Positions 5,812 through 43,188 of a stretch of DNA of 64,000 nucleotides are shown one piece after another. Where the stretch lies: IMG/VR virus record IMGVR_UViG_3300001782_000005, positions 1 to 64,000 of that record. One strand, 5' to 3'. The notes below the pieces were generated by a model. The model ran no database searches and was not told where the DNA came from. It saw only the letters and a list, made by a program, of their open reading frames with translations. Each line of letters begins with the position of its first letter. The stretch's first letter is position 1. Position numbers and translations under genes: made by a program.

Positions 5812-6783
5812 ATGATATACGGAGATTATGAGATTTTTCACTATCATCCTAATATGATAGATCAGGTTGCAAAAGTGATAAAATACCTTTGGGGCGGAAA
5901 ACGCGATTTTAGAATTGACCATCTCAAATGGAAACATTATGAAAATCCTTATTCAAATTTTCCACACGGAATAGTTGCTTTATATAATAGAGAAGTGGTT
6001 GGTTTTAGAGGATATTCTCCTATGAAATGGAGAGTTAAAGGACAAGAGTTTAAAACTTTAATTGCTGGAGATACAGTTGTAGATCAGAAACATCGTATGA
6101 AAGGTTTATCAGTGGCGATGGGTCAAGCAGCAAATAAATATCAATCAAACTATAAGTTCCTTCTAAATTTTACCTCAGGAGGTACTTCAACACCAGGTTA
6201 TTTAAAATTGGGTTTTAGAAAATTTTTGGAGAAAAGTTATTATACAAGGCGTGCTTTTAAAGAAGATATAGAGATAAAAGGCGATTTTAGTGGGGTACTC
6301 TTTTTTGAAATTCCAGACCTAAAGAAAATTTGTGATCTTATTTTGAAAGAGGATAACTTTGATAAGATTACTCCAGTTCGTACTGAAGAATACTTCCAAT
6401 GGAAGATGAGAAATTCTAAAAATAAATATTTATTTTTTGGTTATAAAGACAGAAGCTACGTTATTTTCTCAACTCAACCAAATGGTAATAATGGTTATAT
6501 AGTTGATTACGTAGTTGAAAATGTTGAAGACCTCGACAATATTCTTCGTTTTATACTAAAGACAAAACCGTTTAATTTCACTATGGTTTATAATTATGGA
6601 GTTTGTAATAAGCTCTCTAAAGTTTTGAAAGGACTGAATTTTGAAGAATCAAGTATGACATGGCATTTACTAATACGACCTGTGAAAAAAGATTTCAGTG
6701 AAAGAGATTGGTTTGTTGAAGGAGTTGATACCCGAAAGATCGAGAACTGGAACATGAGAGCTATCTGTTCAGATGATGCTTAG
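5812..6783 (+). CDS. GNAT-family N-acyltransferase
   Basis: HLKWKHYENP, VVGFRG, GDTVVDQKHRMKGL (acyl-CoA loop), FLLNFT, GYLKLGF; starts 1 nt after the kce stop (translational coupling). Confidence 0.75.
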   Translation: MIYGDYEIFHYHPNMIDQVAKVIKYLWGGKRDFRIDHLKWKHYENPYSNFPHGIVALYNREVVGFRGYSPMKWRVKGQEFKTLIAGDTVVDQKHRMKGLSVAMGQAANKYQSNYKFLLNFTSGGTSTPGYLKLGFRKFLEKSYYTRRAFKEDIEIKGDFSGVLFFEIPDLKKICDLILKEDNFDKITPVRTEEYFQWKMRNSKNKYLFFGYKDRSYVIFSTQPNGNNGYIVDYVVENVEDLDNILRFILKTKPFNFTMVYNYGVCNKLSKVLKGLNFEESSMTWHLLIRPVKKDFSERDWFVEGVDTRKIENWNMRAICSDDA

Positions 6784-18290: not shown

Positions 18291-18420
18291 GTTGGAACAA
18301 ATCAATAAAGGAGATAGGATCTAGATGAAGATTTACAAAAAGGTAGTCATAGACATTGAATCAAGTAAGATCTTGGAAGAAGTGTCTTACGACTACAACG
18401 GTCCTATCGCTCAAATGCAG
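18291..18420 (+). repeat. Copy 1 of a ~130-bp dispersed repeat (upstream motif + SD + 32-codon leader)
   Basis: GTTGGAACAAA...GGAGATAGGATCTAGATGAAGATTTAC...GGTCCTATCGCTCAAATGCAG; near-identical copy at 23023-23154. Confidence 0.9.
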
Positions 18421-23022: not shown

Positions 23023-23154
23023 GTTGGAACAAACTGATAAAGGGGAGATAGGATCTAGATGAAGATTTACGAAAAGGTAGTCATAGATATTGAATCTGGT
23101 AAAATACTGGATGAAGTGTCCTACGACTATGAAGGTCCTATCGCTCAAATGCAG
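23023..23154 (+). repeat. Copy 2 of the ~130-bp dispersed repeat
   Basis: Same upstream motif, SD and leader coding sequence as 18291-18420, with scattered substitutions. Confidence 0.9.
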
Positions 23155-26100
23155 ACAACTACCACTACTATGACTTGCCCACCAACCACAGCAGATTGGA
23201 GCACCTGTTTTAGCGAGTATCCTCTTGGAGCTCAACCATCTGATTGGACGGAGCGCTGGTATCCCGCTAGCGTAGAATATAGAGTAGTTGATGGTTCGGC
23301 TGGTCGTATTGGTGGTCAGTCGATGCGTGAACGCATTTCAGTAGCACCATTTGAGAAATCTATTTCTTGGGATACGCCAGGATTTTTAACTGACGTTGAA
23401 GTGCTTGCTAGGGTTAAGTGTTTAAGTACGACTGGAGATCCAGCTGTTATTGTTAGAGGTTCGGGTGCAGATAGTGGTAAATATGGTTTCTATGCTAAAC
23501 TTAATGATGGATTAAATTTAGAAGTTGGCTATTGGAATAATTCTGCTTTATGGGGGATTCCTTTAGCAGATAAGAGATTCTATCATTACGTTCAGACATG
23601 GTATTGGATCAGATTTAGAGTATATGATAATACTATATTAAAAGCAAAGGTATGGGAAGATGGAGATCCGGAGCCTTCTGACTGGATGATAGAATTATCG
23701 ACTGGATCTGGTCCATCCTTCTCTGGTTGGGTAGGAGTAGGTGGAGTTGGAGCTACTGATAATTTCTATGATGTTTATGAGGTTTGGGATTTAAGTTCAC
23801 TAACGACTACTACAAGTACAACTACTACAACTACAACGAGTACAACTGGAAGCACAACAACTTCAATTACATATTTTACAACCACCACAACTATGCCTCC
23901 ATTTCCAACTACCACAACTGCTCCTCCATTTGAGTGGCTCTGTTGTGATAGATGCCTTCAAAGATCAATGCCGGGGTCAGATGGTTCATGGTCAAGTCTA
24001 AATTTTATAACTTATATTCCTCCAATACAGAGATTCTTTTACTGGTTTTATTATTCACCAGGTTTTAGAGTTCTTAAATATTCAGATGACTTTGGTTTGA
24101 CATGGACTAGTCAAGCGACAAAAGTTTCTTCTGGTCGTTTTTGTGTTGATCCCTATGGTTTGGAATTATACGTAATAGCAGGAACTACACTATGTAAAAT
24201 CCTATCTGGAAACCCTGAACTCTTTTGGCAAACTACACAGACAATACCTGCGGCTCCGGCAGGAACTCAGCATTTAATACTGACAAGACCTAGTGGCGAT
24301 CCTCTTATTGGAGGTTTTCTCATTGCTAATGCTGGAGGGGGGAATGTTACTGTTTATCAACTTGCCGATGAAAATATCTCTATAGCATGGCAATTACGTC
24401 TTAACTGGGCGCATGATCCTCTTGAGACTGTTACTAATAGTGATATTGCATGGTGTCAGACTGGAAGTGGAGGAGCAACCCTCATTATCAAAGAGGGCAA
24501 TAGATTTATGTACGCTGAGTGGGCTGGAAGTTTCTTCCAACCAGTTATACATCCAGCAGAGGTTTCAGATTCAGATTCAACATCAATTCAGAATTGGCAA
24601 GTAGTCGCAGATGACTATGGTCAAACTCACCTTTTCTGGAGAGATGAAGTTGATGGGAATTTACACTATCAAAGATATAGCGGGTCAACTTGGTTAGTAA
24701 ATAAAGTTACTATAGGTCCTATAAGTAATAAGTGGGAAGCTCAATATATAAATAGTGAGTTATTTGGAGTCTCTTATGGTATTCTATTTGCTAGGGAAGC
24801 AACGGTTGGAGGTAAAGGGTACTATATTGATACCGAATTTTCTACTGATTTTATAGAGGGGATTAATTGTTGTGATATAGACTTTAGCTTTATAGATCCA
24901 CCTCAACAACTTACTTTAAAACATAGTCATGTTGTTCCGCCGTGTGGGTATATGATTGTACGAGAGAACATATTTAGTACATCCCACGAATTTCAAATAT
25001 TTGATCCTGTTAGTCAGGAGCAGGCACTAACTACAACAAGTACAACTACGACCACAACTACTACTACAACAACTACAACTACAACTACTACAACTACTAC
25101 AACACCTCCACCTGATTTCGAAGTTGAGTTTGATTTCTTTAGATTTTGGAGTCCTGCGACTACAACCACAATAACAGTTACTACTCCTGCTACTACGACT
25201 ATTCCGCCTCTTCCAACAACTACAACTACTATACCACCATATATTCAATTTATTGTTGAGTTTGATGATTTTGAAGGAACTCCGCTAACCACTACAACTA
25301 CTACTACTACAACACTTACTACTACTACAACCACCTTTACTACCACTACGACAGCAACAACAACTACCGTAACAAGTACTGTAACGACAACTACTCCACC
25401 TCCAAGGAACTTAGAGTATAATAAAGATATAATTGGGACGATTGAAGAAGCAGATGCTGAATTTGAAGAATTGGTTAATACACCTCCAGAATCGAGAGAT
25501 GATAGAAAAGCTAAACTTGAGATATTTAGAGAGAATTGGTCTAGACTATTCAATAGCCCACCTTACCAAGTCGATCCAGATGCTGCTGAGACAATTCTAG
25601 CTGCAATAAATCCAGATTTAAAGAATGATATTGATAGCTGGTTTGATGCCGGAGATGATGCAACCCTAATTGAATATCTATTTACAGATTTACACCAGTG
25701 GATACTTGAGCATTTTGGTGCATATCCAAATCTTGGTTCAATTGCTGCGGGCATTCCATTCTTAATTAAGCAAGTTATTGATTTCTTTAAACCTTATAGA
25801 GCAAGACTCGCTTTCTTTGAATCAGCAGCAATTTTCGATGATGCTCTGTTAGATTCTATTAGACTTGACGACGCATCTTCGATGATTATTTATCAGACGG
25901 TTGTTGATACCCCAGTTGCTGATAGTATTCCATGTTGTCCATATCCAGAGACGTCTCCTTGTGATTCAACAGCTGCTCTATATTATGCAAGAGAATATTA
26001 TGACTGTGGTTCATATTATGATAGTGGAATTGTAGATGATTTAGACGACGTACGTCTTACAGTGCGTCAGGATGTACACGATTTCTACTCCTGCCTACCA

Positions 26101-27273
26101 GATGGTTCAGCAGTAATTGACTACAACTTCGATACAACAGCAACAATAACTTTGAGTACTACACTGCCTCCGGAAATTTGTCAGTGGACTGGTCAAGAAG
26201 AACAGTGGGTTGAAGAAGAAGGACAGTGGATAGATGATGAGAGTCAATGCGTCCCAATTGAGGTACTGTTAACCCAATGGATTAACAATAGTCCGCATTG
26301 GCAGACCCAGTGGGTCGATGAATCTCTCCAATGGGTAGATCAAGAATATACAACTCTGACATTACCTCCTATCCCGGATCCAACACCTCCGGATGAACCT
26401 TTCTATCTATATGGTTATATGGCAGGTGGTTGGCAAGATTTTGATGAAGAAGGTTTATTTGATTGTATGGGTAGTAAGGATATTGTTCAAATTTATATAC
26501 AAGATTCGACCGCGATAATTACCACGACTACAACAGTTACGTCAACAACCTCTACTACAAGTACAGTTACTACTACAACTACTACGACTACTACTACAAC
26601 CTCCACAACATCAACAACTACAACTACCTGCTGGGGTCCTATTGGAGACTCATTTGCTGGACCAGACTATAGTCCGCCTAATCCAGCACTTTGGACTGAC
26701 GTGACGTTTGGCGGAACTGGTAATGAAGTTAGAATTCTAAATAATAAACTCAATCTATACATGTCTGGAACTCCTAACCCGGAAGTTGACTCTGTCTTCA
26801 ATCTTGGAGTTGGAGACTTTGATGTTCAAGTCGATTATGAGATACTCCAAAGTACAATTTCAGAAGACTGGTATATAATTATGTCGGGTTGGGATCAAGC
26901 TGCTATTGGATTCTGTAATGGTACTTATGTTGGAGTAATGAGAGGTGTCTGGAGTGGAGTGCATGAATATCGCCTTTACTACTGTAGTGGCAGTTCGTTT
27001 GGATATTTAGGTGCTGTTGCTACTGCTGATATGTCAGGAAAGTTACGTTTAGCAAGAGTAGGTAGTATATGGTCGACTTATTATTGGAGTGGCGGATCTT
27101 GGGTTCTAATTGCTCAGTGGACACAAGTAACACACCCAGTAGGCAATGTGGTTTATCCATTGACGTTCCAACTTAGAAATTTAACTGGTTCTGCTCCGAT
27201 ACTTGAGATTGCGCTTGATAACTTCTGTTTAGTTAGTTATATAACCACGACAACTACAACTACACCGCCATAG
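23059..27273 (+). CDS. Giant modular Thr-rich protein containing a baseplate-wedge-like segment (1404 aa)
   Basis: Shared leader, ConA-like domain, propeller region (SDDFGLTW), acidic helical segment with VIDFFKPYRARL (FFKPYRARL at 25783-25809), QW repeats, C-terminal ConA-like domain. Confidence 0.65.
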   Translation: MKIYEKVVIDIESGKILDEVSYDYEGPIAQMQTTTTTMTCPPTTADWSTCFSEYPLGAQPSDWTERWYPASVEYRVVDGSAGRIGGQSMRERISVAPFEKSISWDTPGFLTDVEVLARVKCLSTTGDPAVIVRGSGADSGKYGFYAKLNDGLNLEVGYWNNSALWGIPLADKRFYHYVQTWYWIRFRVYDNTILKAKVWEDGDPEPSDWMIELSTGSGPSFSGWVGVGGVGATDNFYDVYEVWDLSSLTTTTSTTTTTTTSTTGSTTTSITYFTTTTTMPPFPTTTTAPPFEWLCCDRCLQRSMPGSDGSWSSLNFITYIPPIQRFFYWFYYSPGFRVLKYSDDFGLTWTSQATKVSSGRFCVDPYGLELYVIAGTTLCKILSGNPELFWQTTQTIPAAPAGTQHLILTRPSGDPLIGGFLIANAGGGNVTVYQLADENISIAWQLRLNWAHDPLETVTNSDIAWCQTGSGGATLIIKEGNRFMYAEWAGSFFQPVIHPAEVSDSDSTSIQNWQVVADDYGQTHLFWRDEVDGNLHYQRYSGSTWLVNKVTIGPISNKWEAQYINSELFGVSYGILFAREATVGGKGYYIDTEFSTDFIEGINCCDIDFSFIDPPQQLTLKHSHVVPPCGYMIVRENIFSTSHEFQIFDPVSQEQALTTTSTTTTTTTTTTTTTTTTTTTTTPPPDFEVEFDFFRFWSPATTTTITVTTPATTTIPPLPTTTTTIPPYIQFIVEFDDFEGTPLTTTTTTTTTLTTTTTTFTTTTTATTTTVTSTVTTTTPPPRNLEYNKDIIGTIEEADAEFEELVNTPPESRDDRKAKLEIFRENWSRLFNSPPYQVDPDAAETILAAINPDLKNDIDSWFDAGDDATLIEYLFTDLHQWILEHFGAYPNLGSIAAGIPFLIKQVIDFFKPYRARLAFFESAAIFDDALLDSIRLDDASSMIIYQTVVDTPVADSIPCCPYPETSPCDSTAALYYAREYYDCGSYYDSGIVDDLDDVRLTVRQDVHDFYSCLPDGSAVIDYNFDTTATITLSTTLPPEICQWTGQEEQWVEEEGQWIDDESQCVPIEVLLTQWINNSPHWQTQWVDESLQWVDQEYTTLTLPPIPDPTPPDEPFYLYGYMAGGWQDFDEEGLFDCMGSKDIVQIYIQDSTAIITTTTTVTSTTSTTSTVTTTTTTTTTTTSTTSTTTTTCWGPIGDSFAGPDYSPPNPALWTDVTFGGTGNEVRILNNKLNLYMSGTPNPEVDSVFNLGVGDFDVQVDYEILQSTISEDWYIIMSGWDQAAIGFCNGTYVGVMRGVWSGVHEYRLYYCSGSSFGYLGAVATADMSGKLRLARVGSIWSTYYWSGGSWVLIAQWTQVTHPVGNVVYPLTFQLRNLTGSAPILEIALDNFCLVSYITTTTTTTPP

Positions 27274-32449: not shown

Positions 32450-32815
32450 CTATGGTGTTACTGCTATTTTCCTGATCAGAGTTCTGACTCTAGACTTGTC
32501 CTTTGGATCTAAGGACACAAATTTGATCCCGAACCCGTAGCGGTTAGTCCAGACAACCTTTCCATAAACCAGTATTGGTGAATCATTTGGCAGATCAATA
32601 CATAAATTAGTGAAGACGCCAACTGGCATACTCACATTCCCTGCGGAGATGAATACACCACCAACACTAATGTTTCTGGTTTTTCCGTGTCTGAATTGAC
32701 CATTTAGGTCTGTAAACCTAACGGGTAGTGCTACCTCAACCCTTACTGATCTCCTCTTTGAAACATACAACTTGGCTGTTTGATTCTCTTTTGTTAGTAA
32801 TTCTTCCACGGTCAA
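32450..32815 (-). CDS. PilZ domain protein
   Basis: RRSVR (RxxxR) and NISVGG (D/NxSxxG) motifs, GKVVW, GFGIKF; TTG start. Confidence 0.9.
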   Translation of the reverse strand: MTVEELLTKENQTAKLYVSKRRSVRVEVALPVRFTDLNGQFRHGKTRNISVGGVFISAGNVSMPVGVFTNLCIDLPNDSPILVYGKVVWTNRYGFGIKFVSLDPKDKSRVRTLIRKIAVTP

Positions 32816-33267
32816 CTCCTTCCTGACCCTAGACTTTCGTTTACGAATTTGAAAAGGAGCTTTATGTGATCCTGACTTAAGTTTTCAAATTCGACTGCAA
32901 AACCAGCCTCCTCTCGTCCGGCAACTTCATTAGAGCGGACAACTCGTGCACCAATCATTCCAATATCCGCTCTGAACGGACTAATTACTCGAACTGTCAG
33001 AGCGATCTTTGTACCAACTGGTGGGGGGTCAGAATCCAAAATATATGCTCCACCCACACTGAGGTCTCTAGTGAGTGCACAGGCATGAGTTGCCTTATGG
33101 GTATAAACCAGGGGAAGACTAGCTCTAACCCTCACCTTGAGTCGCTTGAGGACTTCAGTCTGACCTGCGTCGACTACTTGACACTCCATTAAACTTGTTG
33201 CTAACTCCATTTCCTTCGTATCAAGAAACTTCCTTAGCTCCTGTTCTGTGGTAATTTCAATCGCCAT
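32812..33267 (-). CDS. PilZ domain protein
   Basis: RLKVR, DLSVGG, ARVVRS, GFAVEF. Confidence 0.85.
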   Translation of the reverse strand: MAIEITTEQELRKFLDTKEMELATSLMECQVVDAGQTEVLKRLKVRVRASLPLVYTHKATHACALTRDLSVGGAYILDSDPPPVGTKIALTVRVISPFRADIGMIGARVVRSNEVAGREEAGFAVEFENLSQDHIKLLFKFVNESLGSGRS

Positions 33268-35803: not shown

Positions 35804-36015
35804 TTGCCTTTCTCCTCTTTAAATCTTGGGTCATTGGCTATCTGTCTTCCTGCGATATCCATGAAGTCTGCCATACCACAATATGGACATTGGGGAATTT
35901 TTTCACCCGGATCAACTCCTTGAATATACATATTATCTGGAAGAACAGTGTTATGCTTCGCTGGATCGTACTCCTTTTTACACTTATAACACTCAGTTAG
36001 ATTTGACACCATCAA
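35800..36015 (-). CDS. Small zinc-finger protein
   Basis: CYKC...CPYCG; overlapping start/stop coupling. Confidence 0.55.
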   Translation of the reverse strand: MMVSNLTECYKCKKEYDPAKHNTVLPDNMYIQGVDPGEKIPQCPYCGMADFMDIAGRQIANDPRFKEEKGK

Positions 36016-36280
36016 CCTCCATCCTTGTAATTGTTAGTATGATTTTTGGAGCATCCTCTGGTTTTTCGTCTATCACTTCTCGAATCACTTTGAGGATTAC
36101 CTCAATCTCGGAACTATACTTCTTATCCAAGAAAGATTCTGGACAGACATCACATTTAAATGATTCGTACCCCTCAAAAACCTGTTCATGACCTTTATAG
36201 GTAAAGTTTATAGGATCAATGGTTAACAATAATCTTCCTTTAAGACACACTGGGCATAACATACCGTGTTTATATTCCAT
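35993..36280 (-). CDS. YgiT-type zinc-finger (MqsA N-terminal-like) protein
   Basis: CPVCLKG...FTYKGH...FKCDVCPESFLD. Confidence 0.75.
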   Translation of the reverse strand: MEYKHGMLCPVCLKGRLLLTIDPINFTYKGHEQVFEGYESFKCDVCPESFLDKKYSSEIEVILKVIREVIDEKPEDAPKIILTITRMEVDGVKSN

Positions 36281-36282
36281 AT

Positions 36283-36615
36283 CTACCTCAATGATTCGTG
36301 AAAACGAATATGAAATTTAGGACTATCAAATCCACTTCTAAGACAATAGTCAAAAACTTCTCCAGCAGGGTCATAGTTTTCATCTCCAAAGATAAGATTG
36401 TGTCTTCCCTTACTTAGCGGGAATCCATAACTTTTATTCAGAGAATCAATTATTTGCTGTTGTGAGTGTCTAAAATCATAATATATCATCTGGGCAGGCA
36501 AATCGCCCATCCATAAGTGTTTTACAAATTCATCTGCTGTCAAGATATCAACGTAGACATCAATCATATAAGACGTTGATGAACTATTTGTTACGAAATC
36601 TGCTTTTGCTTTCAT
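36283..36615 (-). CDS. FVTNSSS-motif protein (paralog 1)
   Basis: N-terminus MKAKADFVTNSSSTSYMI. Confidence 0.75.
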   Translation of the reverse strand: MKAKADFVTNSSSTSYMIDVYVDILTADEFVKHLWMGDLPAQMIYYDFRHSQQQIIDSLNKSYGFPLSKGRHNLIFGDENYDPAGEVFDYCLRSGFDSPKFHIRFHESLR

Positions 36616-36991
36616 TTACTTCCATCACTCCTAGATTTATGAGTAGTACTAATGCTTCTCTGAATCTAAGTGTAATCCAAAGAGCGGCCATATTAGCTAC
36701 AAAGTCCCCAAACATTGAAGCGAGTACAGATAGAGTTGCAGTCAACATAATTGTGGTAATTGTAAGATTAATATGTGTTGATTCATATGGTCGCCTAAAT
36801 ACAGTAAGCGCAATTGTAGAATAAAAGATCACAAGTAGTAGATAACCAAATTGGCCCTTAAATACTACAGGATAAAGGAAAAGTACAGCAATACTAATAA
36901 GATATATTGGTGTATCTTTCACAAAGGCCGCCGCTATATCTCTACGATCTATTGACTTCAACCAATATTGTCTGAGGTTCACTAATATCAC
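36584..36991 (-). CDS. Integral membrane protein (about 4 TM)
   Basis: Multiple hydrophobic helices; SD AAGGAGGTG; GTG start. Confidence 0.6.
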   Translation of the reverse strand: MILVNLRQYWLKSIDRRDIAAAFVKDTPIYLISIAVLFLYPVVFKGQFGYLLLVIFYSTIALTVFRRPYESTHINLTITTIMLTATLSVLASMFGDFVANMAALWITLRFREALVLLINLGVMEVNESKSRFRNK

Positions 36992-36998
36992 CTCCTTA

Positions 36999-37084
36999 GA
37001 AAAAAAAGTGCCCGGGCAGGCGATCAGTTAGGACGAACCTCCGTAGAGGCCTGGGGCCTGACCAATCACACCACACCGGGCACA
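36999..37084 (-). terminator. Extended multi-helix hairpin ending in a U tract
   Basis: GTGCCCGG/CCGGGCAC outer stem, inner stem, C(UACG)G tetraloop, TTTTTTT on the - strand after the OmpA gene. Confidence 0.6.
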
Positions 37085-37109
37085 CCATAACTACCAGATA
37101 GGTAGTCTT

Positions 37110-37823
37110 CTACTTGTATTGAATGATCTCAACACGACGGTTTTTCTGCCTGTTGAATGGACTGTCTTTCCCGCCCACTAGGTTGGGAAATAGTGGGAAG
37201 AGTTCACCCTTGGCCTTGATTGAGTGAATCTGACTGGGGTTTACACCCTGCTTGATAAGATGGTTCTCAGAAGACCTAGCACGCCTTTCAGATAGTCCTT
37301 GGTTGTACTCTTCCGAACCAAAGGAGTCAGTATGACCAATAATAACAACTTTGACGTCCGGGTTAGCTTTTAGGTCCTCAGCTACCCTATCAAGAACCTC
37401 GGCCGCATCTGGTCTGATGTTTGATTTGTCGAAGTCGAATAGTGCGTTATCCCATTTGAGGACAACAGGTTTGACTTCTTCAACAACAGGAGCCGCCTGA
37501 CAATCACAGGCCTCTTGTGCTTTTGCAAGTGCCTGCTTAATCAGATCCCAGGCTTCTGCACTATCACATCTTACCCATGCATCATAAGCGGCGGCCTTCA
37601 ACCTCTGTGCCTCGTTGTAGATATCGGGGCAATTCTTCATTCCGTTCTTCTCACATTCTTTTAGTTTTGCCTCGACCTCCATTAAGGCATCAGAAAAACC
37701 TTGGTTCTCCATTTCGGTCGAATAGACCTGAAGTGGTTGTTCCGGGGCCTTTGCCTTTTTAGCACATGCTACTGGAAGTACCAGAAAGAGTGCTAGTGAG
37801 ATTAACAATAATTTCCTCGCCAT
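37110..37823 (-). CDS. OmpA-family peptidoglycan-binding (lipo)protein
   Basis: LFDFDKSNI, IIGHTDSFGSEEYNQGLSERRA, NRRVEI; signal peptide ending LPVAC. Confidence 0.92.
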   Translation of the reverse strand: MARKLLLISLALFLVLPVACAKKAKAPEQPLQVYSTEMENQGFSDALMEVEAKLKECEKNGMKNCPDIYNEAQRLKAAAYDAWVRCDSAEAWDLIKQALAKAQEACDCQAAPVVEEVKPVVLKWDNALFDFDKSNIRPDAAEVLDRVAEDLKANPDVKVVIIGHTDSFGSEEYNQGLSERRARSSENHLIKQGVNPSQIHSIKAKGELFPLFPNLVGGKDSPFNRQKNRRVEIIQYK

Positions 37824-37842
37824 GTCTTAATTCCTCCTTTCA

Positions 37843-38970
37843 CTATTTGCTTTCTCCGAATAAAAACCTGAATTTGATTTCACCTGATACATTAAGATTC
37901 AGATCAAATCTTCTGTCCACAGAATTAAGAATGTCAGCAATAGCTTTAGTTATTCCTTCAGCTACATCTTCGACTCCCTTCTTAACTTCTGCTTCTAATT
38001 CTTTTAGTTTCCGTTCCGTATCGTCAACCACTTCCTCAGGTTTCGGTTCTACCTTTGGAACTTCAACTTTTGGTTTATCGAATTTTGGGCCACGAGTGTA
38101 GAATTCTTCAGCAAAATCAGATGGAGAACTGAAAAGCTCTTTTCCAAACTCAACTTTACGTCTCAGTCTCCTTGCTCCTCCCACCCCGATATTTTCAATA
38201 ACTAATAGATCTCTCATTCGATTATCAATTCTTGAGAGTAGGGAAGATGCTGAACGCTTAGATATTCCAAGAGTGCCTGCTACATCTTCAGTCACGGCCC
38301 ACGCCTCATCTCCTTCTAACTTACTTTTTGCGTAGAGATACATTAAAGCACCACGCATCAAATCTTTTGATCTGGGTTGTTTCGTTACTTTTGTTGGTTT
38401 TGGTTTCATCCGTGGTTTGACTGGCCTTACTTTCTTTTTCTTCCTCTCATCTCGACGATAATACTCTTCAACAAATTCTTTTGCGTTGTCAAATGGAATA
38501 TCGTCTTTCACACGCCGTAAGATCTTCTTTTCATCAAACTTTCTCTCAAGAAGATCCCCCATCTTTCTGTCGATGGCAGTCATTACTGACGATGACGTAG
38601 TTTTTGGAACTTCTAAGTGAATAGATAACTCCTCCGTACCTATCCATTTTTCGGTTCCATAAGTTTGATCAAAAAGGAAAGCTAAGGCCACCATGGTCCT
38701 ATCCGATCTCCTTTTTTTCACCATTTTTAACATCCTCTCAAATTCAATTTGTTTAATTTCATCTTTTGAAAATTGTCTAACTGGTCCGTGTTTTCCCCTC
38801 CTTTCTGAATTTCTAATTTTTACAAATTTTCTTTTACACTTAGACATCTTAATTAGATCTTCAAGAATTGACTCTCTAGTTTCCGGACACTCAATTCCAA
38901 GGTTTGTGGGATCTAATGGGATGCCTTCAAGAGTAATGCCTCTGAGATTTGGAACTGTAGTAGTTGTCAT
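37843..38970 (-). CDS. Putative DNA-binding protein with two tandem winged-HTH-like units
   Basis: Repeated unit: AL.FL...W..TE...HL...K...SS....ID..M.DLL...RR...F....F.EE.Y.R; Lys/Pro-rich linkers. Confidence 0.5.
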   Translation of the reverse strand: MTTTTVPNLRGITLEGIPLDPTNLGIECPETRESILEDLIKMSKCKRKFVKIRNSERRGKHGPVRQFSKDEIKQIEFERMLKMVKKRRSDRTMVALAFLFDQTYGTEKWIGTEELSIHLEVPKTTSSSVMTAIDRKMGDLLERKFDEKKILRRVKDDIPFDNAKEFVEEYYRRDERKKKKVRPVKPRMKPKPTKVTKQPRSKDLMRGALMYLYAKSKLEGDEAWAVTEDVAGTLGISKRSASSLLSRIDNRMRDLLVIENIGVGGARRLRRKVEFGKELFSSPSDFAEEFYTRGPKFDKPKVEVPKVEPKPEEVVDDTERKLKELEAEVKKGVEDVAEGITKAIADILNSVDRRFDLNLNVSGEIKFRFLFGESK

Positions 38971-39009
38971 TTCCCACTCTCCTCTGATATTTGGGAAGAA
39001 ATAGGGGGT

Positions 39010-39195
39010 TACAATCCTTTTTCGTCAGGGCATGGACCCCCGGCCATATCTATCCCTTAGCCAAATAAAAGACCATTCCGAAAGGGTTTTCCGGCACGTC
39101 AGAATCTAGTCTTATACCACAGGATTGCAGGTGGCCAGAGGAGTTTCGTGCCAACCACCATATCTGCTAGTGAGGTGGCGACTGGGGGGATAAAC
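39010..39195 (-). ncRNA. Candidate structured RNA with pseudoknot potential
   Basis: GC-richer intergenic stretch with interleaved helices GGUGGUU/GGCCACC and GGCACG/CGUGCC; no known family recognised. Confidence 0.35.
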
Positions 39196-39198
39196 TAT

Positions 39199-39981
39199 TT
39201 AATCAAGGAAGGTTACACCTGCACTCCAACGTCCCTCGAACTCACGGTTCATTACAACCAGGTGCCATCCTTGTAACTTAAGGGTCTTGTGATCTGGATG
39301 ACTGATTGTCCCTCTTGCATAAACACTTTCAACTCGGGACATTTCTCGCATAATTTCATTACCTTCTTTATCATAACGACCAGTACCAACAAGTGTTGTC
39401 CGTGAACCAGTCCTTATGACTTCAGAAGCTATATGCGGTCTACCTGCCATACGACCACGAACCATTCTAACTAGAGGTTCATTAGTATGAATGTGATTTC
39501 CTTCTTCCTCAAAATCTGGTTGAGGGATAAAATACCACTCTCCCTGCCTTAAAACCTTTTCTCCCCTCCTTTCTGCTTCTATGACAGGGTCTCTTTTTAG
39601 ACTATCAATAGCTTGCTCGACTGTAGTTACACGAGCATCACTTGGAAGATTTGCAATGAAATATTCTCTCTCGTCATGACCACATAGGAGACGATCAATA
39701 ATACCCGGTTCATTTTCAACTCCCAATAGAATATGACGAGTCTCAGGTCGATAAGAAAGAACCTTTATACGCTCATGGTTATCAATGAAAAGGATGAATT
39801 TCTCACCCTTACGAGTACGGAGAATATCAAATGCAAAATCTGGATCTGGCTCTCTAGTAAAACTTCTTATCCTCCTATTCCAAACGCTCTCAGCCTCTTG
39901 CCTATCATTACGAACATCAATCTCAAGATTGCACCGACTGAAGTGCTTTTTCAGAACTTTCTTCCAATGGTCGTACTGCAT
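39199..39981 (-). CDS. Hypothetical protein with RQGEWYFIP...H...HPDH motif
   Basis: His-rich beta motif family; ATG 39981 has SD GGAAGGA. Confidence 0.6.
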   Translation of the reverse strand: MQYDHWKKVLKKHFSRCNLEIDVRNDRQEAESVWNRRIRSFTREPDPDFAFDILRTRKGEKFILFIDNHERIKVLSYRPETRHILLGVENEPGIIDRLLCGHDEREYFIANLPSDARVTTVEQAIDSLKRDPVIEAERRGEKVLRQGEWYFIPQPDFEEEGNHIHTNEPLVRMVRGRMAGRPHIASEVIRTGSRTTLVGTGRYDKEGNEIMREMSRVESVYARGTISHPDHKTLKLQGWHLVVMNREFEGRWSAGVTFLD

Positions 39982-40363
39982 CTGAAATCCTTCCCTTCTG
40001 TTTGTCACTAAATTTAGCTAATTTTTCTTTGATCTTATCAATGTGTGCACCAACATTTAAGATAATATATGGCGCACCAGCAGGAGTATCAATCCTTTCA
40101 ACAATTACTCCTAACTCGTTAAGAACCCTTAGAGTATAATCAAAAACCTCTGGGCAGTCGTAAAAGTCCTCCGAACTTACACTCCCATCCATTAAAAGCA
40201 TATCAAAACTCGTGATAACATCATCTATGTGAACTCGTGAATTATCGAGAATATTAGCGTGTTCACGTATACTAAGAAAATTCCTAACATCAAAACAGTT
40301 AGGTAAAACAACTATGTAATTGATAGAGGAACTATTTGTTACAAAATCTGATTTGATCTTCAA
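39923..40363 (-). CDS. FVTNSSS-motif protein (paralog 2)
   Basis: TTG start gives (M)KIKSDFVTNSSSINYIV, in register with the other paralogs. Confidence 0.7.
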   Translation of the reverse strand: MKIKSDFVTNSSSINYIVVLPNCFDVRNFLSIREHANILDNSRVHIDDVITSFDMLLMDGSVSSEDFYDCPEVFDYTLRVLNELGVIVERIDTPAGAPYIILNVGAHIDKIKEKLAKFSDKQKGRISDAVRPLEESSEKALQSVQS

Positions 40364-40374
40364 CTTTTCCCCCA

Positions 40375-40743
40375 TTATTGGTTGGATATTACTTCAAATT
40401 TGATACTCTTAACCTTCTGTAAGAAGAAATGTGTCATATCCGGTCTTACATTAATATGTTCCATAATTATATGACCCATGTAATACGGAACATTACTATA
40501 ATCGTTGAACATTGAAGTTCCATCCTCCAACCTAAAATTTTTGGAATTAAGCATTGTAATTGTTGGTTGAAAGAATCTGAGATTTTTAAAATCATCTCGA
40601 TAACTATATACATTCTGCATCTTATTCATATAATCACCGAAAAGATTAAAGAAATCATCAAGAGTAAAATCCTCTGTCATCTCTAGAAATAAATAGAAAC
40701 TCGCAGAGCTGCTATTGGTTACGAAATCACTTTTTATCTTCAT
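40375..40743 (-). CDS. FVTNSSS-motif protein (paralog 3)
   Basis: MKIKSDFVTNSSSASFYL. Confidence 0.8.
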   Translation of the reverse strand: MKIKSDFVTNSSSASFYLFLEMTEDFTLDDFFNLFGDYMNKMQNVYSYRDDFKNLRFFQPTITMLNSKNFRLEDGTSMFNDYSNVPYYMGHIIMEHINVRPDMTHFFLQKVKSIKFEVISNQ

Positions 40744-41035
40744 GAAACCTCATCCATTCTTGACCATTATCAGAGATAATTCTCGTAAATAAACGACTAC
40801 AACGTTTACATTTAAAGGTTGTCACATTCCTCATAAATCTTGCTGGCCTTGGTTTCCCTCCACAATCTGGACATATTTGTTTCTCCATTATTAGATAAGT
40901 AAGTTTATCATGGTTTACTTCAAGTTTACCACATATGCTTGAGCAATTAGGAAAAACTATACACTCAACACAAGGGAAACCGTCTGGAAGTAATAATTCA
41001 ATTGGAAGATCGGCCTTAAAGGTGAGGGAACTCAT
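40727..41035 (-). CDS. Cys-rich zinc-finger protein
   Basis: CVEC...CSSIC, CPDCGG...CKRCS; ATG 41035 with SD GAGGAG. Confidence 0.55.
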   Translation of the reverse strand: MSSLTFKADLPIELLLPDGFPCVECIVFPNCSSICGKLEVNHDKLTYLIMEKQICPDCGGKPRPARFMRNVTTFKCKRCSRLFTRIISDNGQEWMRFHEDKK

Positions 41036-41417
41036 GACCACACTCCTCATAGTAACTATTCTCTCCATAACTTGCAGGAAATATATCATGGTCCATGTCT
41101 GAGAGAGATTCATCTCTTAATACCCACACAATCCATCTACTATTTGATTCTTTAGCGTAGTGGAGTACGTGTGAATATAATAATGACTGGTATTCATTTG
41201 CGAGTACATGATCTTTAGTATGGACAGCAGCATCTATATATTTATGTATTGTTTCTCTAATATGATCTGCACTATCCCACTCCCTACCATACGACTGTAA
41301 ATAAGCTATCGCCTCTTCTTTTGTAAATTTGGTTTCTGGATCTTTCTCGTATTTTTTCCAGTTGATTACAAAAGCAGTTGAGCTACTGTTTGTCACGAAG
41401 TCTTGTTTTATCTTCAA
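41016..41417 (-). CDS. FVTNSSS-motif protein (paralog 4)
   Basis: MKIKQDFVTNSSSTAFVI. Confidence 0.8.
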   Translation of the reverse strand: MKIKQDFVTNSSSTAFVINWKKYEKDPETKFTKEEAIAYLQSYGREWDSADHIRETIHKYIDAAVHTKDHVLANEYQSLLYSHVLHYAKESNSRWIVWVLRDESLSDMDHDIFPASYGENSYYEECGHEFPHL

Positions 41418-41805
41418 TTAATCCTCCAATCTCCTTTATTCTATTAAAGATATCAGCTAATCCAATATTCACTATGAGGTTATTACCTTCATAAGGTAAA
41501 TCGTAATCTGCTATTATAAAGTTGAGATCTCTGCAGATATCTATTACAATCCACATATATAATCGACTGCTATCAAACAAAAGGTTTTCAATTATGTTTC
41601 CCTCTTCAAGGAGTTTGTCGAAAAAATTCTCTATCATATTGACTTGCATTCCATCATCACTGAATTCCATATAGCTCTCGAAACGATTAAAGATTCCTCC
41701 CTTTTCTAACATTGATAGATGATCTTGTAATTTAAATTCTGATGGAATCATAACGACATAACAAGTAGAAGAACTGTTAGTTACAAAGTCAGATTTAACC
41801 TTCAC
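41383..41805 (-). CDS. FVTNSSS-motif protein (paralog 5)
   Basis: MKVKSDFVTNSSSTCYVV. Confidence 0.8.
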   Translation of the reverse strand: MKVKSDFVTNSSSTCYVVMIPSEFKLQDHLSMLEKGGIFNRFESYMEFSDDGMQVNMIENFFDKLLEEGNIIENLLFDSSRLYMWIVIDICRDLNFIIADYDLPYEGNNLIVNIGLADIFNRIKEIGGLIEDKTRLRDKQ

Positions 41806-42197
41806 TCTTTCTCCTTTGGAAATCTAATAACTACAGATTCAGTTACTTCGATAAACCCGTATTTTCCAAACCACACTTTCAACTCTTCTAAATTCATTCT
41901 TCCATACGGATTTATTGGGTTGATAATTGCGATACCCTTCTCATCACAAAGTTCAACCAAACGCTTCATTAAGACTGTACCATGACCCTTCCCTTCTTCC
42001 ATCGACTTTATTCTATGAAAGAAGAACAAAGGATGTGAACATTCTATATTATAACCTGATAGAAATTCTTTGTGTTTTTGCATTCCAAATGCTGATAACT
42101 CGCAAATTGCTCCTCTGTTAGTCATTAGGCAGATAACTTCATCAGTGATGGTTTCATGCATTATCCTTGGCTCCATTGCCAACTCCTTAGAATCCAA
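41802..42197 (-). CDS. GNAT-like acetyltransferase
   Basis: FHRIKSMEEGKGHGTVLM...WFGKYGF. Confidence 0.65.
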   Translation of the reverse strand: MDSKELAMEPRIMHETITDEVICLMTNRGAICELSAFGMQKHKEFLSGYNIECSHPLFFFHRIKSMEEGKGHGTVLMKRLVELCDEKGIAIINPINPYGRMNLEELKVWFGKYGFIEVTESVVIRFPKEKE

Positions 42198-43188
42198 ATG
42201 GACACTTTTCTCTATTTTGTTTTAGTGTCAACCTAGTTGATACAAAACCACGACTATTATTCCATGCCCTTTTGATAGACATTTTACGCAGGGAAATACC
42301 GCGTCTGCTGTGATCTGCAAATGAACATGGAACTAACATCATATCCGGACTTATATAGCATGACATACGAGCAGCCTCGCATGTATCAAGGAACATCTCC
42401 TCACTCTTGGTCAGACTTGTAATTTGCACAAGTCTATTAACGAGACATGAATCCATGCCTATTTTGAATTTTGTTTTACCTGCCAACCTTAGATCAACAA
42501 ACTCTTTCAACTCACCGTTTGTTAGACTCCAATTCTTCAAATCTTTTCCTCTGCCCTGCGGTTTGAACAATAGGAAAATGACAGCATTTAATTGATCTAG
42601 ATCAATCTTTCCGCTCCAAACATCTTCACCTTTGAGAATATTTACTGCTTTTTCCAAGGATTTTTTAGACAATAGAAAATGTAGATTTGTCTTTATATCA
42701 GAATCCATGAGTTTTTGTAAAGCTCCAAATGTGAAGTCTTGACCATAGTCCGATACTGCAACGGCCCCACACATCTTTGATATCTCGATGTGTTTGCTTG
42801 TCAGACCTAGACCTGATGTTGTGTAATTGGGGACTACGATATTTTCCCGAGCATAACCAACAATCTCTCCAAAGTTTTCGTGTAAATTTGGATCCCCCCT
42901 TCCTCCTAAGGCCACTTGATTTGTGAAGGTTTTAGATTCATTTATTATCCTCTTAAAATCTTCTAACTTCATATTTGGTTGTTTTTGACTACCTTGATAA
43001 CAAAACTTACACTCATTAGGACAATGGCCCATAATCCCAATATCAATTAAATTTGGGTAGTCAAGCATGAATGGATCAGGAAAACCATGTTTTCCAAAAA
43101 TGATCTCTTTGCCATTTGCCACATTAAAAATAATCACATAGCGATCCGTCTCAACGATCTTTTTCATTCCGACCATTCGTGCGACCAT
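42187..43188 (-). CDS. Radical SAM enzyme with Twitch/SPASM-like C-terminus
   Basis: CPNECKFCY (CxxxCxxC), QVALGGRGDP, NYTTSG; C-terminal CEAARMSCYISPD...PCSF...CP. Confidence 0.92.
   Translation of the reverse strand: MVARMVGMKKIVETDRYVIIFNVANGKEIIFGKHGFPDPFMLDYPNLIDIGIMGHCPNECKFCYQGSQKQPNMKLEDFKRIINESKTFTNQVALGGRGDPNLHENFGEIVGYARENIVVPNYTTSGLGLTSKHIEISKMCGAVAVSDYGQDFTFGALQKLMDSDIKTNLHFLLSKKSLEKAVNILKGEDVWSGKIDLDQLNAVIFLLFKPQGRGKDLKNWSLTNGELKEFVDLRLAGKTKFKIGMDSCLVNRLVQITSLTKSEEMFLDTCEAARMSCYISPDMMLVPCSFADHSRRGISLRKMSIKRAWNNSRGFVSTRLTLKQNREKCPFGF

Follow-up and report, generated by a model that had tools for sequence, protein, structure and literature searches.

What does a short N-terminal sequence shared by several small phage proteins do beside a radical SAM (rSAM) gene? 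The question arises from the genome of a marine jumbo phage (IMG/VR record IMGVR_UViG_3300001782_000005), of which we analysed a stretch of 64,000 nucleotides, referred to as the window. Five ORFs of the window begin M-K-x-K-x-D-F-V-T-N-S-S-S. The first-pass annotation had noticed these five proteins, described them as otherwise unrelated, and proposed that the tag is a substrate site, converted by the rSAM enzyme into a cofactor or a cross-link, that creates a family of post-translationally activated phage proteins.

The observation itself is confirmed. All five ORFs are located on the minus strand, hence the positions initially listed for them (36283, 39923, 40375, 41016 and 41383) are the stop-codon ends. 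The N-terminal sequences are MKAKADFVTNSSSTSY (ATG start at 36615), (M)KIKSDFVTNSSSINY (TTG start at 40360 behind a GGGGGA ribosome-binding site, whereas the automatic ORF call starts 5 codons earlier at 40375), MKIKSDFVTNSSSASF (ATG start at 40743), (M)KIKQDFVTNSSSTAF (TTG start at 41417) and (M)KVKSDFVTNSSSTCY (GTG start at 41805). A six-frame scan for [DE]-h-h-x-N-[ST]-S-[ST] returns exactly these five copies in the 64 kb, and an exact 8-mer DFVTNSSS is expected about 5e-6 times by chance in 128,000 codon positions. The columns K2, K4, D6, F7, V8, T9, N10, S11, S12 and S13 are invariant among the five, whereas the remaining sequences are 21-27% identical. The paralogs use different synonymous codons, including both AGY and TCN serine codons, and serines 11-13 switch between the two types, so that conservation acts on the protein and does not reflect a repeated DNA element.

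The tagged genes are part of a string of coupled genes that starts with the rSAM gene (42187-43188, minus strand). The encoded enzyme (333 aa) consists of a short beta-hairpin-like N-terminal segment of about 45 aa, a CxxxCxxC motif (C56/C60/C63), a GGRGDP motif, and a C-terminal Twitch/partial-SPASM region containing the cysteines C248, C270, C288 and C329. It matches Pfam Radical_SAM (1.5e-6), SPASM (0.024) and phrog_7293 (2e-31), while NCBIfam returns only weak hits to SPASM/Twitch families, none of which reaches an equivalog cut-off. Homologs in other viral contigs are 49-57% identical with invariant cysteines, and the cysteines are conserved at 97% or more across the jumbo-phage, T4-like and bacterial clades. 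In a profile search against the PDB, the nearest solved relatives are the peptide maturases SkfB (0.0019) and SuiB (0.0033).

The stop of the rSAM gene overlaps with a small GNAT-like acetyltransferase ORF (41802-42197, minus strand, 131 aa, probable start at M8, position 42176), which in turn overlaps the start of the first tagged gene. The ORF has no Pfam or NCBIfam hit, but its nearest named clusters in the ESM Atlas are all Acetyltransf_1 (score 0.96, 191 shared features). Among the numbered loci of our comparison (L001 and following), homologs are found only in L001-L006 and L030-L036, that is, in the close clade of this phage; the GNAT is not part of the conserved core.

Downstream follow, all on the minus strand, tagged protein E (41383-41805, 140 aa, tag codons 41767-41805), tagged protein D (41016-41417, 133 aa, tag codons 41379-41417, overlapping E by 35 nt), an untagged Zn-ribbon ORF (40727-41035), tagged protein C (40375-40743, 122 aa, tag codons 40705-40743), tagged protein B (39923-40360, 145 aa, tag codons 40322-40360), and an untagged ORF of 260-269 aa (39199-39981) that ends the string. 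Protein E has an alpha/beta body, with orthologs at 56-83% identity; its AlphaFold2 (AF2) model (pLDDT 79) has residues 1-6 below 50 and a first strand at 13-18, and has no fold match in the PDB. Protein D forms its own body cluster (cluster 10), which is seen only in the close clade. The Zn-ribbon ORF, not mentioned in the first-pass annotation, comprises about 102 aa from an ATG behind a GAGGAG site (the automatic call runs to 41113), is conserved in the close clade and matches Pfam Zn_ribbon_IS1595 only below cut-off (9e-4). Protein C belongs to body cluster 1, present in 22 loci, and has a predicted ferredoxin-like alpha+beta body (pLDDT 81, residues 1-10 below 50, first strand at 14-22); Foldseek returns weak matches to dimeric ferredoxin-like proteins (best E 1.7e-3, none at or below 1e-3, TM about 0.45). 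Protein B groups with E in the same BLASTP cluster after removal of the tag. Both are therefore paralogs beyond the tag, and the window holds four body families rather than five. The last ORF is conserved at 77-79% identity in the close clade, and no family was found for it. The fifth tagged protein, A (36283-36615, minus strand, 110 aa, tag codons 36577-36615), is located 3.3 kb from the operon and is translationally coupled to a MqsA-like Zn-ribbon ORF (35993-36280). It belongs to body cluster 4, present in 15 loci from diverse jumbo contigs.

We next asked whether the tag is a peculiarity of this phage. A profile of the tag matches 12,632 representative proteins (E<=1e-3), almost all from residue 1, and defines a very large uncharacterised family. 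Of 97 members scanned, none has a Pfam family at gathering level (one sub-threshold hit is at chance level). In 279 of 279 viral occurrences the codon preceding K2 is ATG, GTG or TTG. Two MSKIK variants in locus L158 would regain the same register after removal of the methionine, as inferred from methionine aminopeptidase specificity. The bodies fall into 37 BLASTP clusters, and HHalign comparisons among the top 12 are at or below 40% probability, except for one related pair. In AF2 models of two different families, residues 1-10 are low-confidence coil in front of strand 1, although they are the most conserved residues; the low confidence could partly reflect shallow alignments.

The tag is strongly linked to the rSAM gene. 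Of 79 rSAM-seeded viral loci, 54 have strict tags on the same strand, increasing to 58 if tag variants are included, and many of the tagged genes start 10-40 nt after the rSAM stop; about a quarter of these loci show no tag within 10 kb. Of 29 tag-seeded viral loci, 13 have the rSAM within 10 kb and 6 more have it elsewhere on the same contig. Of 35 tag-seeded bacterial and archaeal loci, 32 have an rSAM gene directly next to the tag. In GenBank phages, rSAM homologs occur in 172 records and the tagged phrog_7397 protein in 175, with the same genus counts, although the genes are about 20 kb apart. The latter co-occurrence, among T4-like phages, is confounded by shared ancestry. We also note that a second, unrelated SPASM rSAM is located next to tags in L113, L114 and L127, hence the partner may not be unique.

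The tags of one genome can also change together. All 5 tags of L106, from at least 3 body families whose orthologs elsewhere have D6, carry S6, encoded by AGT, TCG, TCT, TCT and TCA. Both tags of L051 have H7, and all T4-like tags are MKIRxGFVSNSSSSSF. The changes at tag position 6 track changes in the enzyme. Position 166 is K in all 65 jumbo rSAMs other than L106, and K or R in 28 of 28 bacterial rSAMs, whose tags carry D6; it is L in L106 and Q in the phages KP15, Miller and D479, where the tags have S6 or G6. Position 242 is K in 62 of 66 jumbo rSAMs (Q in two D6 loci, L in L106, M in L118) and in 28 of 28 bacterial rSAMs, and is G in KP15 and Miller. A lysine is lost in 4 of 5 loci without D6 tags, compared to 2 of 45 loci with them (Fisher p=3e-4, not corrected for phylogeny). 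The covariation rests on about 3-4 independent lineages, and there are exceptions: L087 has S6 but keeps both lysines, L050 and L093 have D6 but K242Q, and L053 mixes D, S and G at position 6 while keeping both lysines.

The pair is not restricted to phages. In bacteria, on chromosomes and plasmids, it is found in a four-gene operon that consists of an Avs2-like STAND NTPase (PADLOC Avs2, 4e-26), a protein of about 135 aa, the tagged protein and the rSAM. Individual pairs of enzyme and tagged protein are KP15_135 with KP15_102 in phage KP15, and WP_038496256 with WP_051489734 on pAt of A. tumefaciens. The description as phage proteins in the first-pass annotation is therefore too narrow.

The most likely explanation, to which we assign a probability of roughly 0.6, is that the 13-residue sequence, with consensus M-K-I-K-x-D-F-V-T-N-S-S-S followed by [TAS]-[SAN]-[FY] and a hydrophobic strand, is a portable handle that is recognised, and most likely chemically modified, by the adjacent Twitch/partial-SPASM enzyme. 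In this view, one enzyme would serve all tagged proteins of a genome: five in the window, at least two in Klebsiella phage KP15, at least five in Vibrio phage D479, up to 12 in one jumbo contig, and one in the bacterial operons. The free, flexible N-terminus would enter the enzyme, with K2, K4, D6 and F7 providing docking and D6 probably facing the conserved K166 and K242. The invariant T9-N10-S11-S12-S13 stretch would lie at the SAM/[4Fe-4S] site, where the 5'-deoxyadenosyl radical abstracts a hydrogen; the product could be an oxidised Ser or Thr, an epimer or a cross-link. The modified N-terminus would then give otherwise unrelated small proteins a common new property. As the same pair is built into the bacterial operons, the module would work in phage-bacterium conflict on both sides, and points to a previously undescribed protein modification. 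The analysis establishes the tag and its lock to the N-terminus, selection at the protein level, the diversity of the bodies, the genomic coupling and co-occurrence with the rSAM, the concerted evolution of the tags and their covariation with the enzyme. Direct binding, the role of the tag as substrate and every chemical detail are inferred; chemistry cannot be read from sequence. A Pfam scan detected no recognisable RiPP recognition element in the enzyme, and the tag has no Cys, no Gly and no (C/S)xPxR motif, so none of the well-known rSAM protein chemistries maps onto it.

The initial interpretation is thus supported in part. Genome-wide co-occurrence of the motif with this rSAM clade had been proposed as its test, and is found in four independent samplings, reinforced by the concerted tag changes and the tag-enzyme covariation; the opposite case, a motif that occurs independently of the enzyme and is simply the first strand of a shared fold, is not what we observe, since residues 1-10 precede strand 1 in the models and the bodies are mostly not homologous. 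The conversion of a Ser, Asn or Thr into a cofactor or cross-link, and an activation of the proteins, remain hypotheses.

Among the alternatives, it is possible, although less likely, that the tag is a docking handle but not a substrate. The tagged proteins would then act as interchangeable adaptors or regulators that bring different targets (nucleic acids, nucleotides, host proteins) to the enzyme or switch it on and off, with the radical chemistry taking place on something else. Coupling, concerted change and covariation fit binding as well as catalysis, and the diverse bodies could be target-binding modules. In the KpAvs2 operon, a small accessory protein (Avap2) binds the STAND protein constitutively and the rSAM (Avap1) is needed only against some phages (PMC11564622). 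However, the near-absolute invariance of T9-N10-S11-S12-S13 is more than a docking strand usually needs, and the nearest solved relatives act on peptides. The authors of PMC11564622 further report no room for an NTP in a model of Avap1, which bears on our enzyme only if Avap1 belongs to this rSAM family.

It is unlikely that the tag is the conserved N-terminal element of one ancient, fast-evolving superfamily, a structural or catalytic motif of a shared fold whose association with the rSAM reflects only common inheritance in the same mobile gene neighbourhoods. All tagged proteins are of similar size (median 133 aa) and alpha/beta, the tag always runs into a hydrophobic strand 1, some body clusters are related or borderline related (clusters 3/7 at 96%, 4/6 at 40%, 5/9 at 23%), and cluster 0 (phrog_7397) has additional conserved acidic and His residues that look like an active site. 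However, no other column is conserved across families, residues 1-10 lie outside the fold in the models, and shared ancestry explains neither the same-position changes with different codons in non-orthologous paralogs of one genome, nor the Asp6/Lys covariation, nor the retention of the pair across phage and bacterial contexts with different neighbours.

A sorting signal for packaging into the capsid or ejection with the DNA is very unlikely: although the pattern of a conserved N-terminus on diverse small proteins in multi-copy cassettes resembles the internal-protein loci of T4, and the cassette lies between tail-sheath and baseplate genes in the window and in L118, it is on the opposite strand from the structural genes, the rSAM of KP15 lies in a region with annotated middle promoters among small non-structural genes, no L/I-x-E protease site follows the tag, and such a signal would explain neither the bacterial copies in STAND operons nor the covariation with the rSAM.

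A comparison with known systems places these findings in context. The capsid-targeting sequence of T4 internal proteins is likewise a short conserved N-terminal peptide on otherwise unrelated, fast-evolving small phage proteins; the tag differs in that it lacks a prohead-protease cleavage motif, is coupled to an rSAM and is also present in bacterial operons. The anaerobic sulfatase-maturating enzyme (anSME/AtsB), on which the initial analogy was based, is an rSAM with auxiliary clusters that oxidises a Ser or Cys of a full-length protein, and a Ser-rich target is conceivable here. However, its defining substrate motif (C/S)xPxR is absent from the tag, no anSME model appears among the NCBIfam hits, the enzyme has only four conserved C-terminal cysteines and not the seven-Cys SPASM pattern, and the targets are not sulfatases. 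Two PHROG families, phrog_7293 for the rSAM and phrog_7397 for the tagged protein of KP15-like phages, are both annotated as 'unknown function'. The rSAM of the window matches phrog_7293, and KP15_102 as well as the rSAM-adjacent cluster 0 tagged proteins match phrog_7397 over their full length. The five tagged proteins of the window match phrog_7397 essentially through the tag (tag-region matches for four, that of A being weak over residues 1-82 with E 0.0025, and none for B).

The KpAvs2 operon of Klebsiella pneumoniae (Bechon et al. 2024, PMC11564622) consists of Avs2, Avap1 (radical SAM) and Avap2 (DUF6375-like), and its accessory genes matter for defence in a role that the paper describes as unknown. 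The bacterial relatives of the pair are found in exactly such a context, an Avs2-family STAND NTPase with an rSAM and small accessory proteins in one operon, and the similarity is one of architecture. The operon found here has four genes and a STAND protein of 848-915 aa with other N-terminal domains, neither the tagged protein nor the 135-aa protein hits PF19902 in a HMMER search, and the phage loci have no STAND gene.

The RiPP-type maturases of the SPASM/Twitch group with leader-bearing precursors (SkfB/SkfA, SuiB/SuiA), and multi-precursor systems such as the prochlorosins, differ in several respects. Here, the putative substrates are folded proteins of 90-220 aa and not short peptides, the conserved part comprises only 13-16 residues and is locked to residue 1, no RiPP recognition element is detectable, the tag contains no Cys, Trp or other known cross-link partner, no protease or exporter accompanies the genes, and the hosts are phages and defence operons. 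What is shared is one rSAM with an auxiliary-cluster domain encoded next to its (here inferred) substrate genes, several substrates per enzyme, a conserved N-terminal part with a hypervariable remainder, and the best sequence matches in the PDB, SkfB and SuiB.

The window is part of a 277-kb marine-sediment jumbo myovirus, IMGVR_UViG_3300001782_000005. It carries genes for tail sheath, baseplate wedge and large terminase. On the minus strand, five ORFs begin with the same 13 residues, with starts at 36615, 40360, 40743, 41417 and 41805, and a six-frame scan finds no further copy in the 64 kb. The observation of five commonly tagged ORFs made in the first-pass annotation therefore holds. Ten columns are invariant among the five tags (K2, K4, D6, F7, V8, T9, N10, S11, S12 and S13), whereas the rest is 21-27% identical. 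Each start has a plausible ribosome-binding site; two of the ORFs use TTG and one uses GTG. The codons differ between paralogs, and the three serines are encoded by both AGY and TCN codons. What is conserved is therefore the peptide, and a DNA- or RNA-level repeat or gene conversion as the cause of tag identity is rejected on this synonymous-codon diversity. A search for DNA similarity of the 7.3-kb region to GenBank phages returned none, and a tblastn search of GenBank phages with the 24-aa tag alone gave no match, probably because of the low-complexity filter.

The genes form a string with overlapping or nearly abutting stops and starts that consists of, in order, the radical SAM (rSAM) gene (42187-43188), a GNAT-like ORF (41802-42197), tagged E, tagged D, a Zn-ribbon ORF (40727-41035), tagged C, tagged B, and a 260-aa ORF. 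Tagged A lies 3.3 kb further on and is translationally coupled to a MqsA-antitoxin-like Zn-ribbon ORF (35993-36280, minus strand; Pfam 8.5e-7, just under the cut-off) that is conserved with it in the close clade. B and E are paralogs beyond the tag, while A, C and D each belong to a different body family. The block sits on the opposite strand between the tail-sheath gene and the baseplate and virion genes, and the same placement recurs in L118, a locus of a distant relative. A promoter and terminator scan of 35.8-44 kb gave nothing above shuffled expectation. The same minus-strand accessory block encodes an OmpA-family lipoprotein-like protein (37110-37823, Pfam 1.2e-20) and a PilZ-domain protein (32812-33267, 2.9e-10), which point to a Gram-negative host and to possible interference with c-di-GMP signalling. 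Upstream of the tail-sheath gene lie very large plus-strand ORFs of 2781, 1564 and 1404 aa (6836-15181, 18325-23019 and 23059-27273, respectively); PHROGs gave no hit for the neighbouring 992-aa ORF. For the GNAT-like ORF, the Pfam and NCBIfam scans gave no hit and the PDB match was weak (1xeb, E 0.84), while in a feature search of the ESM Atlas all ten best named clusters were Acetyltransf_1 (top score 0.96).

The tag defines a huge, position-locked family. A locus search seeded only with the five proteins returned 29 viral loci with 1-6 tagged ORFs each. Over all viral loci there are 279 occurrences in 194 unique proteins (median length 133 aa), and in every case the codon before K2 is ATG (217), TTG (34) or GTG (28). 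The consensus is M-K-I-K-x-D-F-V-T-N-S-S-S-[TAS]-[SAN]-[FY]-h-h, with N10, S11 and S12 invariant and T9 invariant in 193 of 194. In a Microgenomates-binned MAG contig (L158) two tagged genes (starts at 6410-6412 and 7199-7201) begin MSKIK/MSKFK instead of MKIK. Removal of Met before Ser, inferred from the specificity of methionine aminopeptidase, would make the lysine residue 2 again, which suggests that the distance from the free amino terminus matters. A profile of 97 members finds 12,632 representative proteins at E<=1e-3 among 1.84 billion, nearly all matching from residue 1. Some database proteins (P0015, P0016, P0025 and P0151) carry two tags, one at residue 1 and one internal, the latter mostly preceded by Met; they look like fusions of adjacent tagged genes or missed stop codons, and P0016 also has Cys-rich Zn-ribbon-like stretches. 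Searches of tagged proteins against Pfam, NCBIfam and PADLOC gave nothing: none of the 97 members has a Pfam family at gathering level (there is a single sub-threshold, chance-level hit to ANAPC10). The only library family is phrog_7397, annotated as 'unknown function'.

With the first 18 residues removed, the proteins fall into 37 BLASTP clusters, at least 12 of which are conserved across many genomes. Profile-profile comparison among the 12 largest relates only clusters 3 and 7 (96%), with all other pairs at or below 40%. AlphaFold2 models of E and C are confident overall (pLDDT 79 and 81, respectively); in both, residues 1-10 are below 50 and unstructured, and the first strand starts at residue 13 or 14. 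A Foldseek search against the PDB returned no fold match for E and only weak, generic ferredoxin-like similarity for C. The tag therefore precedes the predicted fold and then runs into strand 1; it is not simply the first strand.

The association between the tag and the rSAM is visible from both sides. The enzyme is far more conserved than the tagged bodies (49-57% identity across lineages), and a search seeded with it found 176 viral homologs. Of the 79 loci kept, 54 carry strict tags and 58 carry tags when variants are counted, almost always on the same strand and often starting 10-40 nt after the rSAM stop. Conversely, of the 29 tag-seeded viral loci, 13 have the enzyme within 10 kb and six more have it elsewhere on the same contig, including contigs of 248-312 kb. 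A 9-kb contig, that of database protein P0079, has a 336-aa Radical_SAM gene followed by about 14 consecutive same-strand ORFs of 108-166 aa, one of which is a tagged protein with Ser6; it is probably a very large tag cassette. In cultured phages, distant homologs of the enzyme (28-30% identity, phrog_7293) occur in 172 of 50,697 GenBank records, and full-length homologs of the enzyme-adjacent 'cluster 0' tagged protein (phrog_7397) occur in 175 records, with the same genus counts. In Klebsiella phage KP15 the genes are about 20 kb apart (KP15_135 against KP15_102 and KP15_97), and the two tagged genes (L111/L124, KP15 66.5-74 kb) lie near a cytosine DNA methyltransferase, a nucleotidyltransferase and a vWA/MIDAS protein (KP15_100). 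Vibrio phage D479 has at least five tagged genes within about 11 kb upstream of its enzyme. The cluster 0 protein, which usually follows the rSAM (e.g. L014:2899-3396, KP15_102) and whose family is absent from the window, has a conserved C-terminal motif, Y-x-F-x-Y-x-D-E-D-G ... E-[ML]-E-H-G ... H ... S-x-H, that looks like a metal or active site. A tag-seeded scan of 185,579 bacterial and archaeal species genomes returned 35 loci, and in 32 of these an rSAM lies directly beside the tagged gene. We note that the tag may be served by more than one rSAM family: a second SPASM radical SAM family (343 aa, cluster motif at residue 15), with no BLASTP similarity to the window's enzyme, sits directly next to tagged genes in two independent contig lineages (L113:9975-11006, L114:7610-8641 and L127:15628-16644). 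The L113 and L127 copies are 56% identical to each other.

Tags within one genome also change together. In the viral locus L106 all five tags have Ser6, although these proteins belong to at least three body families whose orthologs elsewhere have Asp6. The five serines are encoded by AGT, TCG, TCT, TCT and TCA, which excludes gene conversion. In locus L051 both tags have His7, and all T4-like tags share MKIRxGFVSNSSSSSF. This is the signature of many ligands following one receptor. The tag further covaries with the enzyme. Position 166 is Lys in all 65 jumbo-phage enzymes apart from L106, and Lys or Arg in 28 of 28 bacterial enzymes, whose tags all carry Asp6; it is Leu in L106 and Gln in KP15, Miller and D479. 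Position 242 is Lys in 62 of 66 jumbo and 28 of 28 bacterial enzymes, but Leu in L106, Met in L118 (tag Gly6), and Gly in KP15 and Miller. At least one lysine is lost in 4 of 5 lineages without Asp6, against 2 of 45 with it (Fisher p=3e-4), a test that is not corrected for phylogeny, rests on three or four independent events, and has an exception in locus L087. We take it as suggestive evidence for a direct Asp6-lysine contact.

The enzyme itself carries the CxxxCxxC motif of the radical SAM superfamily (C56-x3-C60-x2-C63), which in that superfamily binds the [4Fe-4S] cluster near the N-terminus of a partial TIM barrel; it is invariant in 7 of 7 aligned sequences and conserved at 97% or more in 97 homologs. 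The Pfam Radical_SAM match has an E-value of 1.5e-6, at 28.9 bits against a cut-off of 29.5, while bacterial relatives score 48.9-57 bits. The glycine-rich SAM-binding motif is present as ALGGRGDP (residues 93-100, invariant in the alignment), its assignment to the 'GGE'-type motif being inferred from position. Of the seven-cysteine C-terminal SPASM motif, which binds two auxiliary [4Fe-4S] clusters, only C248, C270, C288 and C329 are conserved. Pfam SPASM gives 15.3 bits for the window protein, below the cut-off of 21.5, whereas bacterial and T4-like relatives pass it; this fits a Twitch-like or reduced SPASM domain better. The enzyme reaches no NCBIfam equivalog, and its weak matches are all to SPASM/Twitch families: NirJ2, the tungsten-cofactor maturase, MftC, PqqE and SkfB. 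The best PDB matches of its profile are the peptide maturases SkfB and SuiB, at E about 2-3e-3. A midpoint-rooted FastTree of 97 sequences separates three clades, namely a jumbo-phage clade, beside which one MAG contig that looks viral falls, a bacterial clade with support 0.95, and a long-branched T4-like clade.

In 31 of the 35 bacterial loci the pair is the distal half of a four-gene operon that consists of a STAND NTPase (848-915 aa), a protein of about 135 aa, the tagged protein, and the rSAM. The STAND protein matches PADLOC Avs2 models (4e-26 and 3e-22), and in one case it carries a trypsin-like/LmuA-like N-terminus; in Sulfurimonas a GmrSD restriction gene lies next to it. The operon is also found on plasmid pAt of Agrobacterium tumefaciens Ach5, where the tagged protein, WP_051489734, begins MKLKMDFVSNSSSTSF and the rSAM is WP_038496256. 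Neither the window nor any viral locus has the STAND or the 135-aa gene. Bechon et al. 2024 (PMC11564622) showed that a Klebsiella Avs2 needs an operon partner, Avap2, for defence and that its rSAM partner, Avap1, is needed against some phages, and state that both roles are unknown. HMMER searches of the tagged and the 135-aa proteins gave no hit to DUF6375 (PF19902) and established no link to DUF6375/Avap2; the link to PF19902 in that paper came from HHpred.

The best-supported reading (probability about 0.6) is that the tag is a free N-terminal peptide that docks into the rSAM and is modified there, probably within T9-S13. Plausible chemistries are oxidation of Ser or Thr by a Twitch-type dehydrogenase, epimerisation, or a C-C or C-O cross-link, none of which is supported by data here. 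The interpretation in the first-pass annotation, that the tag is a substrate site converted by this enzyme into a cofactor or cross-link, is partly supported: the link between enzyme and tag holds, while the conversion into a cofactor or cross-link is conjecture. The position lock, the conservation at the level of the peptide, the diversity of the bodies, the genomic association with the rSAM, the concerted changes and the covariation are results of the analysis, whereas binding, modification and its chemistry are inferred from them. The GNAT-like gene is specific to the clade of this phage and could add a second modification, such as acetylation of K2, K4 or the amino terminus, which is speculation. 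The main rival, which we consider unlikely though not negligible, is that the tag only docks and that the tagged proteins are adaptors or regulators of the enzyme. A shared-fold motif unrelated to the enzyme and, least of all, a virion-sorting signal fit the data poorly.

A further-reaching reading is compatible with the evidence but remains tentative. In this view, the tag and its rSAM would constitute a previously unrecognised post-translational 'arming' system for protein N-termini, used by both sides of the phage-bacterium conflict. In bacteria it would mature an accessory or effector protein of Avs2-like STAND sensors, while phages would carry their own copy of the enzyme and would have spread the 13-residue tag onto dozens of unrelated small effectors, possibly including decoys or inhibitors of the bacterial system. 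The chemistry would then be a new radical modification of a Thr-Asn-Ser-Ser-Ser site close to a free amino terminus. If the tag is indeed the substrate of this enzyme, more than twelve thousand clusters of 'hypothetical' proteins, mostly from phages, would gain a common handle and a testable biochemical step, and there would be a radical SAM protein modification with an unusually short, transplantable recognition tag at the extreme N-terminus. It would also give a concrete hypothesis for the radical SAM accessory genes of Avs2-type antiviral STAND operons, which Bechon et al. 2024 showed to matter for defence but could not explain, and would be an example of one maturation module shared between defence systems and phages. 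Cultured, tractable carriers exist in Klebsiella phage KP15 and relatives, Vibrio phage D479, and A. tumefaciens Ach5 plasmid pAt, so that the idea is open to direct test.

We found no description of the tag in Pfam, NCBIfam, PADLOC or the PHROGs annotations, nor in literature searches on the motif, the KP15 proteins, phrog_7397, and rSAM enzymes of Slopekvirus or jumbo phages. The interest of the system lies in its size, its presence on both sides of phage defence and its direct testability. The rSAM systems of Kaur et al. 2020 (C-terminal FxSxx peptides) and Ophion (rSAM+PHP+PRTase) are different systems. With respect to the capsid-targeting sequence of T4, which ends in an L/I-x-E prohead-protease site, positions 1-24 of 194 tagged proteins show no such motif. 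With respect to anSME/AtsB, the substrate motif (C/S)-x-P-x-R is absent from the tag consensus of 194 unique proteins, and no sulfatase domain was found in 97 members. The seven cysteines of the full SPASM family are likewise not present. The closest comparison is with a RiPP-type rSAM maturase with many leader-bearing precursors, which the system resembles in its inferred working; putative substrate genes with a conserved N-terminal part are encoded next to the enzyme. It differs in that no RiPP recognition element, the PqqD-like domain that binds the leader peptide, was found in the Pfam or NCBIfam scans, only about 45 residues preceding the cluster motif, and in that its inferred substrates are folded proteins tagged at residue 1.
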